Positions 7,542 through 16,236 of a DNA stretch of 64,000 nt are shown one piece after another (position 1 is the first letter of the stretch; each line of letters starts with the position of its first letter). Position numbers and translations under genes: made by a program. The notes below the pieces were generated by a model, which was given only the letters and a program-made list of their open reading frames with translations, made no database searches and was not told the DNA's origin. Origin of the DNA: Ostrea edulis (Eukaryota); contig NC_079168.1 of NCBI RefSeq assembly GCF_947568905.1, positions 89,776,001-89,840,000 on the forward strand, in the 5' to 3' direction.

Positions 7542-10500
7542 TCACAGTTCCTCATGTTGGTTTCTTACGGGTTCCTCCTCCATGATCAAATTTCCATCAT
7601 CTGCCAACTCTATTAATCTCTCTTTCACAAGGTCATCAGGAGTTTTTATGGAAGACTGTGACCTGCCATCTTCAACCTTTTCACTTTCAGAAACATCTAC
7701 AGTGATTGGGTCCGGATCCTCCCCTATATTTACACTCTCATGCTCTGCCTCCTCAAAGTTGGTGACTCCACCAGTTATATTGGAGATTATTTTAGTGAAC
7801 AGTTTTGGATAATTGTCTATAGCAGATTCTATATCCATTGTCATTAGTTCTTCCCAAGTTAACACTTTGTTACCATCTGTATCAATTAAGGAGAACACCT
7901 AAAATAATCACAACATTGTTTAATGTACATGTAAACACTAAATTAAGGAGATCAAATTGACATACAGGTTATTCAAATGCCGATAATTAATTCTCTTCTT
8001 GTTACATTGTAAAGGATGAAATACAAAAGAAATGAAAAAAACATACCTCAAACAGTAAAACTGGTATGCCATTGATTTTTCAATACATGTATTACAAATG
8101 ACTAAGAAACTGGCCTAAAATTACACTGCCGTATCTTACACGTACCTCATTCAGACTGCCCACATCCTCCTTTGTAATGGATGGGATTTCTCTCTGAATG
8201 TAATCACTGAATGAACGTTTGTAGAAACTCATAACATCCCCGAAAAGTTCCAAAAACAACATCCTGCAGAGACAGACACACTAAGATCGATCAACATGAC
8301 TGTTTAGTTATATGTTGCCCAGTAGTCCACACTTGTGGTTAATTACTTTCACATTCATTAAACATTAATATTCCATACTAATTCTCATGATAACCTAAAT
8401 TCAAAATTATCCGCTGTACTTATTTCTTGCTATAAAGACAAGGTTACTACAGCATATCCTTTAGAAATAATCCAGCCTAATGTAAAATAAACACAGCAGA
8501 TAACAAATTCAAGGCATCATACTTTTCTTAACAATCCCAGGGACAAGTCTCCAGCTTAACTTTTGGGATGAGAACATTAAAATCTATACATGTACCTGGA
8601 CTCCATTTCTGGGTCTGCTTTCTTTATAGTAGACAGAGGAACACTAGAGTTTTGGAACGGATCCACATCATCGCATTCAGAGCTGTTAAACCAGGGCAAA
8701 TGGTGGAACCAGAAATTGACTGCTAGGTTCCTCCCAGGTTTAGAATCCACAAAATGCAACCACCTGAGGAGGAAATGGTGTAGAAATTTACAGATATTCA
8801 TTAATTAAATGCATGTATCTTTGACTAATACAAAATGCACAAATATTGTGCAATTTATCAATATTATACTGGATTATAATATTGATTTGATTATTTACAC
8901 ACAATTTTACAAGATGTTTTAAATGAAGTCATTATAAGGAACTAAACTAATATTTTCTGATCAAGGTGCTCTTTATTTTGATATTTGTCCTGATTTTATG
9001 AAATTAAATGCTATATCATGACTCACTTGTACGGGATAAATAAACAGTCCCCCTTACTGATGGTTATACGACTGTATGGAACATTGTGGAGTTGTGGAAA
9101 CTTGGTCATATCCACCGACTCCACGTCTACTGTACTGTATCCACCATCCTCTTTCCACCCGTCTGCCATCACCATATCGCCATACTTCTATAAAGGATGA
9201 ATTGTTATCTATGTAATAGCAATTTCAAAAACAGACATCCAACACCACCAGAATTTATTATTAGGTCATCCATTGCTTCAAATCTAATCTAATTTACATA
9301 TATATACCAAACAACATTGGATCCAGTCTTACACTTAGCAAATAACTCTTTTCATTTGTTATTTGTGACCGTTAATGCTGATATAACGGTCTGAAACAGA
9401 TTTTTATCAGTAATGTGTTAGCAGAGCCAGTAAAATGGGTGTTTGTGACTGTTAAATCACCATTAAAGAGACATATGCATAGACACGATTTGAGCCGAAA
9501 ATTTTCAAATTTTATTTTTCCATTTTTAATGCTTAGAATTATTTCTAATGGTTAGCAAAAACTTGAATATCAATTGTCAAGGTATATGAGAGATACAGAG
9601 CTCACAATTCTTTGTAATGTAAACAGGGCTCGTGCCATGGTTTTGTTTACATAGGTTAAATATACTAGTAAAAGTTTCATTTAAAGCAGATTTTTTCAAT
9701 TCACAATTAATTCTAAATACAATTAAATAGTTTTTAGTGTTTGGCACATCTCATTTTGTTTTAAACATGCCATTTTCTATCATTTCATCTACTTGACAAT
9801 GTATATGTAAACAAAAACATGGCATGAGCCTTGTTTACATTACAAGATCTTGTCACAAAGAATACAAATATGTAATACGAGAGCCCGGGCCATCACTCAC
9901 CACTCAAAAGTTATGAGCAAGGTTCAGGTTTTAGACAGACAGGACAAAAACAGTACACCCCAAACCCCAACTTTAGTCATGGCACTGCACAAAAACTCTC
10001 AAAGTGTAGAAAAATGTGTATCAAAGTAGGAAATATTGTTTTAGATACTGTTAAAACGGCCAAACTTCTTGGTGTACAAATAGATGAATGTCTAACCTGG
10101 TCTGTACACATTGATTCTTTATGTAAGAAACTTTCACAGAAAATAGGCATTTTACGTCGTCTGCAAACTTTTATGTCAAATGCAGCATTATTGAAAATTT
10201 ATAACACTGTTATATTTCCTCATTTTAACTATTGTTGCACAGTTTGGTGCTCAGCCAAAAACAGGGTTTTTATTGACAGACTTTTTTTAAGTTACAGAAA
10301 AGGGCAGCCAGAATTATATTGAAGGTGAAAGTAACTCAGACTTCTACAGCTGATATTTTTAGTGTTCTTAAATGGATGCCTGTTCATGATTATTTTGTAT
10401 ATAGAAAACTAGTGCTTGCTTTTAAGGTTCTTAATAACATGACACCAGAATATATGAACGTTTTTAATTTTGTCAGCCAAGTTAGTTCCAGAACAACAAG

Positions 10501-13500: not shown

Positions 13501-16236
13501 AATTTAGACATGGTCATTTGATCAACTCCACTGCCCCTATTCTCCTTTTTACCAATCTCGACTTCCACATCAGTTTGTCCAAAATTTTCCCTGAAATCAA
13601 TAAACAATTTAAAATAAGTATCATCATCATGAACTCTATGGTACTTTTGAATTCTTAATTATAACCACTAAATTTCATGTACATGTATGTAAATGAAATA
13701 CACCAATCTAATTAAAATTAGAACCCTTGATCCACTCACTTACATCAGATCAAAGGATCTAACCTTAATTAGATTGAATATTACACTATTGTAACACTGG
13801 TTTCCCATTTTTGAAGTCTATTTTTTTCAGTGATTAGTCACAGTCTTAATGGAAAACATTTTTGAATACTGGCCATTTAGGCCTCTGTTTCTGAACTGTT
13901 TACTAGATAAAGGAGACACAGTCCAGATCATATAAAAGTATATAAAGAAGAGAGTGTTCAAGAGTATTATATAGGTTTATACAAATTTATTAGTTAAAGT
14001 GTGATAGTAAACATTCTGATTAATTGGGCGTGGGCTTCGGGCCAGTGAATAATTTCGAAGACTTAATCAGAGCTCCAGATAAGGTGCGTATCAGCGTAAA
14101 TACTCATTAAATTTTACCAAATACGCATTTAAGTTGAAAATCATGCGTAAAATTATGCATTCGCGAATGTAAATACGCTATACACTCCCAAAGTAATGCG
14201 TATTTGCAATACATGTAGTATAATATAAATACGAATTATCTATTAATACGAATTAATTGAGGTTAGCCCAGGGCTTGATCATACATGAAATTTAGCTATG
14301 AAATACGTTTTCATGACAATCACAATTTTGAAAAATTGGAAGAGTTAACTCAAAACACTATTATATAGGCCTACTTGTTATACTTGCTGTTTCAACAAAG
14401 GTGAATACTTTATAGACCCATTTCATGACCATAGGGTCAGTGAAAATGTAGACAGAGCCTAATCTAAACAGATGTTATTTACCTGGAGTGGCCAGGGTCT
14501 ACCAAGGTGTTAATTGCTATATCCCATGGCACTCAAAGAAATACACAGAGACAGAACATGGTAGAAATCTACCTGTCCATGCTTTTTTATAGTTTTGATA
14601 TACACATGACCTGTCTCAGGGACCTCTGCAGAGTTTCTGTGGTCATAGTGTTTGAATAATGGTTGTATTCCTAAGGGTAGCTGACACACATTCTACACAC
14701 ACACCCTCTTTCTCTCTCTCTGTCATTGACTCAATGAACAATTTCTGTTATAAATATAGAGGTATCATAAATTGATGACATAACTTATTTCAATAAGTTA
14801 CACAAGTTTTAGAAATTATTGTGCAAATTATTAATTGATTTCTGATTGTGTAATTTATAATACATGTACAGGTATATAGAGGGGAAAAAATTACAATTAT
14901 ATTGAAATTGCATTGTTCAGGGGCCTTTTTAAAAACAATTGAATTACAAGAAAATAGCAGTTGTGGACAGGTCATTGCTATCAAAACTCAGGTATACTGG
15001 GCTTCCTCAAGATCTAAAGAATGCCTGTAGATACTGGCTGTTATTGTTACCTCTCTGGGGTAGCCCTAGACCACTGTCTGCAGATGTTACTCCACCTGAG
15101 ATCTATTGTTAAATGTTTGATTGACAGGCAGCTTACAATTCTGGGGTGTCAACTTAAAAATGGGTCTTTAATTCTTCTAGATGTTTACTTATGTTTATTA
15201 ACAAAAAATGACCAATTAAAAATCACAACCTTACAATATAGATATTTTATATATATATATATATATATATAAAAACCCTGTAATCACATGGTAATATACG
15301 ATAGCATCAAGGATTGCTAGCAATACTCAATATATAAACTTAACTTTTCTTCTATATATAGAAAAAGAAATCAATCAAAATATCGATCACACTCTACAAT
15401 CAAGAAATTTATGTTCTGGAACAGACAATTGTTTTAAAATATTTTTGCATTAAAATCACAGTTTATTTCAGAGTAATCTTTAAGATGCTTGACTGATGAC
15501 ACAATAAAGTGTACAGTCAATGAAATTTTTGCTAACTGCAAACATGATCAGCTGATTTGTTCATATGATAGTAATTAACAGCTGAATAATTATAAGTTTA
15601 CAGTGTTTTGCATGCACAATGTTCAAATTTAACTACAGGGTTTTGACATATATATATAGCTTATGAGTCAATGATGCACACTATATCGTAAAAACCCTGA
15701 CAACAATCTCTGCATTAAGTACATCTAAAACATATACAGCTGTAACGGGAAGGGAGAAAATGCAACGGACCAGACTGGGATTCAAACTGGGGCCCCCTGA
15801 ATCTCTAGTCAGGTGCTCTACCAACTGAATTATCTGGTCATTGGTGATCAAACCTGACTTCATTAGTTTTCCTTGTTCGCAAAAAATGTAATATATGTGT
15901 CAACATAATTACAGCAATATAAAATTGGTGGAAAACAACAACCCCCCACATTCCCATCATACTTCTATTGTTTGACAACCTGAGATACTGATCAGTCCAG
16001 AGACGGTAGGCTGGAATATTGTCTGTCTCCAGCACCTTCTTCATCACTAGAGGCTGTCCATTCTTTACAAATTCCTGGTGGAAAACCCATGGGGAGGGAA
16101 ATTTTCCGGTCACTGGTATGCCACCAATAGGTTTCTGGTGGCTTCCAAGGGGCTTTAAGTGTCCTGGGAGACCACTCTCACTCTCACATGATGCGACTGC
16201 AAGCAGTGCAAAAAGAAGAAAGCAGCTGTTCATCAT
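7542..16236 (-). CDS. Secretory-pathway JmjC (Cupin_8-type) 2-oxoglutarate/Fe(II) dioxygenase with EF-hand and C-terminal HEEL, 460 aa; exons 16236-15980, 13590-13439, 12748-12579, 9187-9027, 8763-8596, 8263-8146, 7898-7542
   Basis: Seven GT-AG exons sum to 1383 nt with consistent phases. The product has a signal peptide (MMNSCFLLFALLAVASC), WFSSGGTKSHLHRDLLDNINCLLDGKK (HxD, 2OG-binding N and K), GDCLFIPYKWLHFV (third His), AVNFW, an EF-hand loop DTDGNKVLTWEE, and ends NQHEEL*. Confidence 0.92.
9462..9850. mobile_element. Non-autonomous DNA transposon fragment with an internal inverted repeat
   Basis: Begins ttaaagagacat...gacacgatttg. gtaaacagggctcgtgccatggttttgtttacat (~9618-9651) pairs imperfectly with atgtaaacaaaaacatggcatgagccttgtttac (~9805-9838). 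Family not determined. Confidence 0.4.
10005..10895 (+). mobile_element. 5'-truncated CR1/L2-group LINE (3' end of ORF2, frameshifted) with 3' UTR and (TAT)n tail, in intron 3 of the JmjC gene
   Basis: ORFs 10014-10322 (AKLLGVQIDECLTWSVHID...IFPHFNYCCTVW) and 10319-10675 (LKWMPV...KRSFKVSSTILWNQLP...SFKSAY) are typical of the C-terminal part of LINE ORF2. They are followed by aataaaagaatttattattattattatta. Confidence 0.88.
10955..12130 (+). mobile_element. Stacked pearl/HINE-like elements (partial satellite core, one long copy 11176-12075, start of another at 12071)
   Basis: Family start motif acaagaggccca(c/t)aggcc...tcacc(t/c)gag occurs at ~11178 and ~12072. An internal motif ggggtcagaaccc...atttacaatttt occurs three times. 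Homologous to 1945-2367. Confidence 0.75.
15740..15860 (-). mobile_element. tRNA-derived SINE-like unit (same family as 6605-6985)
   Basis: Minus strand: gaccagataattcagttggtagagcacctgactagagattcagggggccccagtttgaatcccagtctggtccgttgcattttctcccttcccgttac. Confidence 0.75.

Follow-up and report, generated by a model that had tools for sequence, protein, structure and literature searches.

HRJD genes encode JmjC-only proteins whose nearest human paralogue is KDM8, also known as JMJD5 (Cao et al. 2019, PMC6390904). They have been described in cnidarians, placozoans, annelids, molluscs (with three copies in Crassostrea gigas), echinoderms, hemichordates, amphioxus, Ciona and chelicerates, and as absent from vertebrates, insects and nematodes (PMC6390904). 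RNA interference (RNAi) against planarian HRJDa and HRJDb impairs regeneration (PMC6390904), a result that was later confirmed (PMC11077316). The proteins consist of a JmjC domain and an EF-hand motif with no other catalytic or reader domain, and their expression in the fly improves gut barrier function non-cell-autonomously (Nagai et al. 2024, PMC11295675). Epigenetic regulation has been proposed for them (PMC6390904), and they have been discussed as potential histone demethylases (PMC11295675). Here, we describe a gene of the oyster Ostrea edulis that lies on the minus strand at positions 7542-16236 of a 64,000-nucleotide stretch of contig NC_079168.1 (89,776,001-89,840,000; the whole stretch is called the window below). 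Judged by its sequence, the gene is an oyster member of the HRJD family, in which a luminal topology has apparently gone unrecognised. With a probability of roughly 0.75, we regard its product as a soluble resident of the lumen of the endoplasmic reticulum (ER) and a working Fe(II)/2-oxoglutarate (2OG) JmjC-only hydroxylase. The interest of the locus is that the compartment implied by its sequence contradicts the published epigenetic model.

Collagen P4H, PLOD, P3H and ASPH are ER-luminal Fe(II)/2OG hydroxylases of secretory client proteins, several of them held in place by KDEL-type signals, and belong to 2OG-oxygenase families other than the Cupin_8/JmjC clade. FKBP7 and FKBP14 carry EF-hands and share a modular logic with the oyster protein, in which an enzyme domain is followed by EF-hands and a His-type retrieval signal, but their catalytic domain is an unrelated peptidyl-prolyl isomerase. 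Both proteins (ending in HDEL) are ER-localised (PMC2140024). JMJD8 is likewise JmjC-only, has a signal peptide and resides in the ER lumen (PMC5684140). An initial annotation of the window, made from its letters alone, had noted that JMJD8 probably has a non-standard active site; it indeed carries HxH instead of HxD and is suspected to be inactive, whereas the oyster protein has H-R-D, a comparison made by description only (PMC5684140). The same paper describes no EF-hand in JMJD8 and makes no mention of KDEL. The best match in both sequence and fold is JMJD5/KDM8, an arginyl C-3 hydroxylase, which shares the HxD...H triad, the 2OG ligands and a glutamate (E238, equivalent to E97) with the oyster protein. 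The two differ at about 26% identity: ARM_KDM8_N and Y243 of JMJD5 are absent from the oyster protein, which has in addition four cysteines, an EF-hand pair and, at its two ends, a putative signal peptide and an acidic tail terminating in HEEL.

Gene structure, expression and family

Seven exons, rebuilt from the window and joined across introns that are all of the GT-AG type, give a coding sequence of 1383 nucleotides and a protein of 460 residues ending in HEEL, exactly the length that the initial annotation had given. Exon 1 (15980-16236) holds the start codon, the signal-peptide-like residues 1-17 (16186-16236), the motif PGHLKPLG (16144-16167) and the start of the Cupin_8 domain, and exon 2 (13439-13590) holds E97 and the family motif GKKENR (13536-13553). 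Exon 3 (12579-12748) encodes C147, W160, S168, H171 and D173 (12639-12647), N177, C180 and K186 (12600-12602), and exon 4 (9027-9187) the central double-stranded beta-helix, including the strand GDCLFIPYK with C241. In exon 5 (8596-8763) are found H250 (8754-8756), W265, the N-glycosylation sequon N273-S-S (8679-8687), C277 and a second sequon, N285-S-S. Exon 6 (8146-8263) provides the helices of a non-canonical first EF-hand half and the entering helix of a canonical EF-hand, whose loop DTDGNKVLTWEEL (7845-7883) lies in exon 7 (7542-7898), followed by an NIT sequon (7773-7781), the acidic disordered tail (7557-7772), HEEL (7545-7556) and the stop codon (7542-7544). The start codon is the first ATG past an in-frame stop 20 codons upstream, and coincides with the starts of the orthologues.

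The model was compared with contigs of public sequencing runs placed on window positions 7500-13499, which cover exons 2 to 7. A spliced contig of 1989 nucleotides from run X8 has no mismatch to the window, and one of 1217 nucleotides from run X1 stems from a related oyster species that is about 2-3% diverged. After adjustment for ambiguity, both runs contain the junctions 7898|8146, 8263|8596, 8763|9027, 9187|12579 and 12748|13439, which are exactly the predicted introns, so that five of the six splice junctions are confirmed by spliced contigs from two oyster species. The remaining junction, between exons 1 and 2, is based on its GT-AG sites and on an alignment with orthologues that runs across it without a break. 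Since the contigs match the model, the gene is expressed and the exon encoding the EF-hand and HEEL is part of the mRNA; transcripts without that exon had been named in the initial annotation as evidence that would speak against it. Among the junctions listed for 7500-13499, no alternative junction falls inside the gene. The coding differences listed between the two species number 13, of which 11 are synonymous, and the run X1 species carries an in-frame 12-nucleotide insertion at window position 7655 (DDKQ on the coding strand), by which the acidic tail changes in length while the HEEL end is kept. The mostly synonymous differences and the in-frame insertion indicate purifying selection on the gene.

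Exon 3 (56 residues), used as the query of an exhaustive HMMER search, returned 486 proteins at an E value of 0.001 or better. Closest to the window product, which is itself missing from the protein collection searched, are ostreid proteins, with full-length identities of 70-71% in Saccostrea and 67% in Crassostrea virginica. With the Saccostrea echinata orthologue as its seed, a word search matched proteins from oysters, scallops, mussels, abalone, cephalopods, Lingula, annelids and a rotifer, as well as proteins from cnidarians, Trichoplax, a sponge, echinoderms, hemichordates, amphioxus, Ciona, sea spiders and a lamprey. Their automatic names are JMJD5-like, JMJD7-like, KDM8-like, TYW5-like or uncharacterised, much as the initial annotation had foreseen in expecting a KDM8- or TYW5-like label. 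The lamprey (Petromyzon marinus) protein P0202 ends in SDEL and contains all the family motifs, and a second protein, P0199, is 76% identical to it; the lamprey member is an exception to the published loss of HRJD in vertebrates. A lamprey-seeded word search over at most 8000 candidates gave this close relative and no jawed-vertebrate member, which is weak evidence of absence.

The Ostrea edulis genome (G000, 895 Mb) contains at least four further multi-exon loci of this presumably luminal JmjC family, at C5:90301812-90316194 (minus strand), C5:64088820-64095611 (plus), C3:44831724-44840315 (plus) and C6:54001422-54005711 (minus). One of them shares its contig with the window gene, at a distance of about 0.5 Mb, and weaker tandem matches are found at C6:59343032-59360489. 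The genome also has a canonical JMJD5/KDM8 orthologue at C1:61295679-61296932 (L001:1679-2932; minus strand), an intronless gene for a protein of 417 residues with Cupin_8 and ARM_KDM8_N domains. This protein ends in FSVSFWWQ, has neither a hydrophobic N-terminus nor an EF-hand nor a KDEL-type end, and shares 26% identity with P0151, a Saccostrea cucullata orthologue of the window protein. The window gene was considered as a JMJD5 orthologue itself and rejected as such, because it lacks the ARM_KDM8_N domain, a separate true JMJD5 is present in the genome and identity is as low as 26%.

Assignment of the window gene to HRJD is based on architecture, phyletic pattern and a reading by eye of the planarian construct sequences. 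The protein has a JmjC domain and an EF-hand and no other catalytic or reader domain, as in the definition of HRJD, and both the phyletic pattern of the named matches and the position of KDM8 as nearest human paralogue in the ranking of structures agree with the published family. The supplement of PMC11295675 gives the planarian constructs as text obtained by optical character recognition (OCR), with base drop-outs. Read by eye, DjHRJDa starts with MLQHLSILFNILVFSC, contains HTD...ENINC...GDCLYIP..WIHQV and ends in KYEL, and DjHRJDb (supplementary file 3) has a hydrophobic start, PVGHLRSLG, an EF loop and the end HDEL. These motifs tie the family of the window gene to HRJD, and on this reading its targeting signals are also found in the planarian reference proteins. 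Whereas the publications assume an epigenetic role, the window protein carries signals of a luminal type; signal peptides, KDEL-type ends, conserved cysteines or the ER are not mentioned in PMC6390904, PMC11295675 or PMC11077316. A literature search found no report joining JmjC, signal peptide, EF-hand and hydroxylase, and nothing relevant on JmjC, KDEL and the ER lumen.

The initial annotation had presented the locus as an undescribed system, a view to which any existing functional description of an orthologue would be contrary. As a gene family it has been described, with RNAi and transgenic phenotypes (PMC6390904, PMC11295675, PMC11077316), in papers that give neither biochemistry nor ER topology; in its topology and mechanism it apparently is undescribed. 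A specialised role in shell or matrix proteins of calcifying animals, also suggested there, is rejected on the phyletic range, which includes many non-calcifying animals: anemones, placozoans, planarians, Ciona and the lamprey all have members of the family.

The JmjC core

Exons 3, 4 and 5 each match Pfam Cupin_8, in an order colinear with the profile (exon 3 with an E value of 4.3e-07 at profile positions 127-169; exon 4 with 3.3e-06 at 187-225), and full-length orthologues match it (PF13621) with E values of about 1e-35. With these colinear exon matches and the same make-up in more than 100 relatives, the JmjC architecture is far beyond chance. Against the PDB, single exons give weak matches only (JMJD7, E 0.1; JMJD5 chains with exon 4, E 0.002) and a family profile is needed, which matches JMJD5 at 1.3e-34, JMJD7 at 5e-27, TYW5 at 1.6e-21 and FIH at 8e-16. 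P0151, which is 71% identical to the window protein, served as the structural proxy. Its AlphaFold model (predicted local distance difference test, pLDDT, 86.4; predicted template modelling score, pTM, 0.81) is confident, the EF-hand region included, the acidic tail alone being disordered (pLDDT below 50). In a Foldseek search with this model JMJD5 ranked top, with template modelling scores of 0.81-0.84 and root-mean-square deviations of 2.4-3.1 Å.

Residues were mapped by profile alignment to JMJD5, with ligand roles taken from the structure of that enzyme (PMC5862942), and conservation was counted throughout in a set of 128 full-length relatives, whose range extends from sponges and cnidarians to amphioxus and lamprey. 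The Fe(II) ligands H321, D323 and H400 of JMJD5 correspond to H171, D173 and H250 in the motifs H171-R-D173 and W-L-H250, kept in 128, 127 and 128 relatives, respectively. N327, which binds the C1-carboxylate of 2OG, corresponds to N177 (125/128); the C5-carboxylate ligands K336, Y272 and S318 correspond to K186 (126/128), Y126 (127/128) and S168 (128/128); and W310, which packs against the 2OG methylenes, to the invariant W160 (128/128). E238, whose salt bridge holds the substrate arginine in JMJD5, has its equivalent in E97 (122/128), close to the almost invariant exon 2 motif GKKENR, in which K100, K101, E102 and R104 are kept in 119, 120, 123 and 124 relatives. According to this mapping, the cofactor site is intact, and the substrate pocket is related to that of JMJD5 without being identical to it. 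Given that E97 is retained and that the adjoining acidic E102 is near-invariant, a basic target residue is a reasonable guess, though not a result. Taken with the structural model, the alignment makes it a well supported prediction that the protein is catalytically competent as an Fe(II)/2OG hydroxylase.

Could the JmjC fold instead serve for binding only, so that the protein would be a pseudo-enzyme or a Ca2+-binding scaffold of the lumen, much as JMJD8 has been proposed to be? JMJD8 is a precedent, as a JmjC protein of the lumen whose activity is doubted (PMC5684140), and planarian HRJDb also reads HxH by eye. The oyster protein, however, has all eight positions that define the Fe(II) and 2OG sites of JMJD5, each of them kept in at least 125 of the 128 relatives, and such strict conservation is not expected without catalysis. 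We therefore consider an inactive scaffold decidedly unlikely and favour an active hydroxylase, in keeping with the catalytically intact site announced by the initial annotation. If the H-Y-H of DjHRJDb is real, it hints at a link between the HRJD family and JMJD8, which is characterised by the same substitution and might be a derived HRJD.

Predicted targeting signals and the EF-hand region

In a hydropathy analysis of the 460-residue product, residues 1-17 (MMNSCFLLFALLAVASC) form the sole strongly hydrophobic segment. The putative signal peptide has an 11-residue hydrophobic core, and A15 and C17 are small residues. The predicted cleavage site is immediately followed by a (P)GHLxPLG motif, of which GHLxPLG is kept in about 100-113 of the 128 relatives. 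At the other end, residues 457-460 are HEEL, which fits PROSITE PS00014, and the last 80 residues (381-460) contain 23 D/E against 6 K/R. Sequons are located at N273, N285 and N382; one at or adjoining the N273 column is present in 69/128 relatives, from cnidarians to lamprey. Together with the Fe(II) triad, N177 and K186, the EF loop and the acidic tail, these are the features that the initial annotation had listed, and all are present. The protein further contains four family cysteines, C147, C180, C241 and C277, which are kept in 127, 128, 128 and 123 of the relatives; the single relative without C147 also lacks C277. None of the four positions has a Cys counterpart in human JMJD5, and the canonical oyster JMJD5 has a Cys only at the C147 position.

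A hydrophobic N-terminus occurs in 105/128 relatives, a C-terminal xxE[LF] in 109/128 and both together in 92/128, with a strict PS00014 match in 72/128. The commonest terminal tetrapeptides are HEEL (18), KDEL (15), HTEL (12), HDEL (12), KEEL (9), RDEL (8) and HDEF (6). KDEL receptor 1 binds HEEL, HTEL, HDEF and KxEL like KDEL; AHEEL binds it as well as AKDEL does, and a human protein ending in HEEL is found in the ER (PMC2140024). Predicted secretory-pathway and ER-retention signals are therefore present and conserved across the family, as the initial annotation had proposed for the single protein. The invariant extra cysteines, the recurrent sequon, the signal-like N-terminus and the KDEL-type end combine into the signature of a luminal protein, which is not a proof of localisation.

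According to the published working model for HRJD, the protein would be cytosolic or nuclear, with histones or other intracellular proteins as the targets of its JmjC domain, and its hydrophobic N-terminus would be no signal peptide. Among solved structures, its closest relative is indeed the nuclear JMJD5, and the HRJD papers propose epigenetic regulation (PMC6390904). Yet the coupling of a hydrophobic N-terminus to a KDEL-type C-terminus in 92 relatives would be hard to reconcile with such a location, as would the four near-invariant cysteines and the recurrent sequon. When expressed in fly cells, HRJDs do not localise to the nucleus (PMC11295675), and it is the genome's own canonical JMJD5, with its ARM_KDM8_N domain, that is devoid of luminal features. 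An intracellular enzyme of this kind is thus very improbable.

The signal-peptide-like N-terminus and the sequons would suit any secretory protein, and the enzyme might accordingly act in the Golgi or outside the cell, with a HEEL retention that is weak or transient. In reporter assays, retention by some PS00014-type motifs is poor (PMC2140024), and 19/128 relatives do not end in xxE[LF]. Against a site of action beyond the ER stands the retention of xxE[LF] in the other 109 relatives across phyla, with commonest forms (HEEL, KDEL, HTEL, HDEL, KEEL, RDEL and HDEF) that bind KDEL receptor 1 or localise to the ER; moreover, an extracellular 2OG oxygenase would presumably be cut off from Fe(II), 2OG and ascorbate. 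We hold a secreted or post-ER enzyme to be unlikely, and residence in the ER lumen to be the better account.

The EF-hand claimed by the initial annotation was recovered as an exact PROSITE PS00018 match at residues 348-360 (DTDGNKVLTWEEL). The PS00018 loop is present in 67/128 relatives, and the four key Ca2+ ligands are kept in the aligned loop in 99/128. Positions 296-377 of the family profile match calmodulin chains with whole-sequence E values of about 1e-8 to 1e-6. In the P0151 model, the helices encoded by exon 6 have pLDDT values above 90 and the EF loop lies between predicted helices. By loop sequence and model, this is a helix-flanked EF-hand with ligands at loop positions 1, 3, 5 and 12, for which Ca2+ binding is predicted.

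Several observations weigh against an active, Ca2+-binding enzyme of the ER lumen. The N-terminus has no basic n-region, and its putative -1 residue would be Cys or Ala. Pfam EF-hand scores of single sequences reach 17-21 bits, less than the gathering cut-off of 25, and EF-hand_1 on exon 7 (E 0.0018) is also below the cut-off. The substrate residue Y243 of JMJD5 is not kept, and aligns to E102 in a loop of uncertain alignment. The iron motif of DjHRJDb reads H-Y-H by eye from the OCR text, possibly as an artefact, and not every family member need be active. Lastly, the assumption that the ER lumen is supplied with Fe(II), 2OG and ascorbate is drawn from the analogy of P4H, PLOD and ASPH.

The mechanism that we favour for the oyster protein would begin with its entry into the ER, guided by a cleavable N-terminal signal peptide. 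In the lumen, it would probably be N-glycosylated, at the conserved N273 sequon, and disulphide-bonded through the four family-specific cysteines, with C180-C241 and C147-C277 as the predicted pairs. Molecules that escape to the Golgi would be returned by the KDEL receptor upon recognition of HEEL. A JMJD5-like double-stranded beta-helix core would bind Fe(II) via H171, D173 and H250 and hold 2OG by Y126, S168, N177 and K186, with W160 packing against it, and the reaction would most likely be side-chain hydroxylation of proteins that pass through the secretory pathway. The EF-hand pair, packed on the core, and the acidic tail may bind luminal Ca2+, in a role that is probably structural or regulatory.

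Genomic surroundings and implications for HRJD

Over intron 3 of the JmjC gene (window positions 9300-12300), all four runs show a very high contig depth, which reaches about 10,000 at 11700-12100, and many aberrant joints, a pattern that indicates interspersed repeats. Two plus-strand open reading frames (ORFs) in this intron, at 10014-10675, resemble the C-terminal part of a non-long-terminal-repeat (non-LTR) retrotransposon protein, and have no Pfam match. At 34076-36660 on the plus strand, consecutive ORFs of 237 and 627 residues, the second with the reverse-transcriptase-like motif FYADDSQLY, probably represent a fairly intact non-LTR retrotransposon. A single ORF of 1623 residues at 20857-25728 (plus strand) contains numerous C..C...H..H units of C2H2 zinc-finger type in appearance, as well as ESPLAAEKIPSQQVT in tandem repeat, and constitutes a neighbouring gene on the strand opposite to the JmjC gene. 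Long tandem minisatellite arrays, open in several frames on both strands, extend over 28771-33396, 48280-48855 and 50427-51164, and a run of 156 N at 18656-18811 reflects an assembly gap or masking.

Extending the argument from the oyster gene to its family, we lean towards the view that all HRJDs are ER-luminal, Ca2+-binding, active hydroxylases of secreted or membrane proteins and not chromatin regulators, and that they form a modification system that goes back to the ancestor of animals and was lost in jawed vertebrates, insects and nematodes. Absence from mouse, fly and worm probably explains why the family has been overlooked. Protein hydroxylation in the ER is known from the collagen prolyl and lysyl hydroxylases and ASPH, and JMJD8, the one JmjC protein of the lumen to have been studied, is suspected of being inactive; if our view is correct, a catalytically intact JmjC enzyme would be added to the ER lumen of most animal phyla. 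The regeneration defects of planarians and the non-cell-autonomous improvement of gut junctions in the fly would then arise from luminal hydroxylation. A practical warning follows for work on these proteins, as a tag at either terminus would destroy a targeting signal. The luminal reading thus offers a concrete, testable alternative to the epigenetic account of the regeneration and gut-ageing phenotypes of HRJD.

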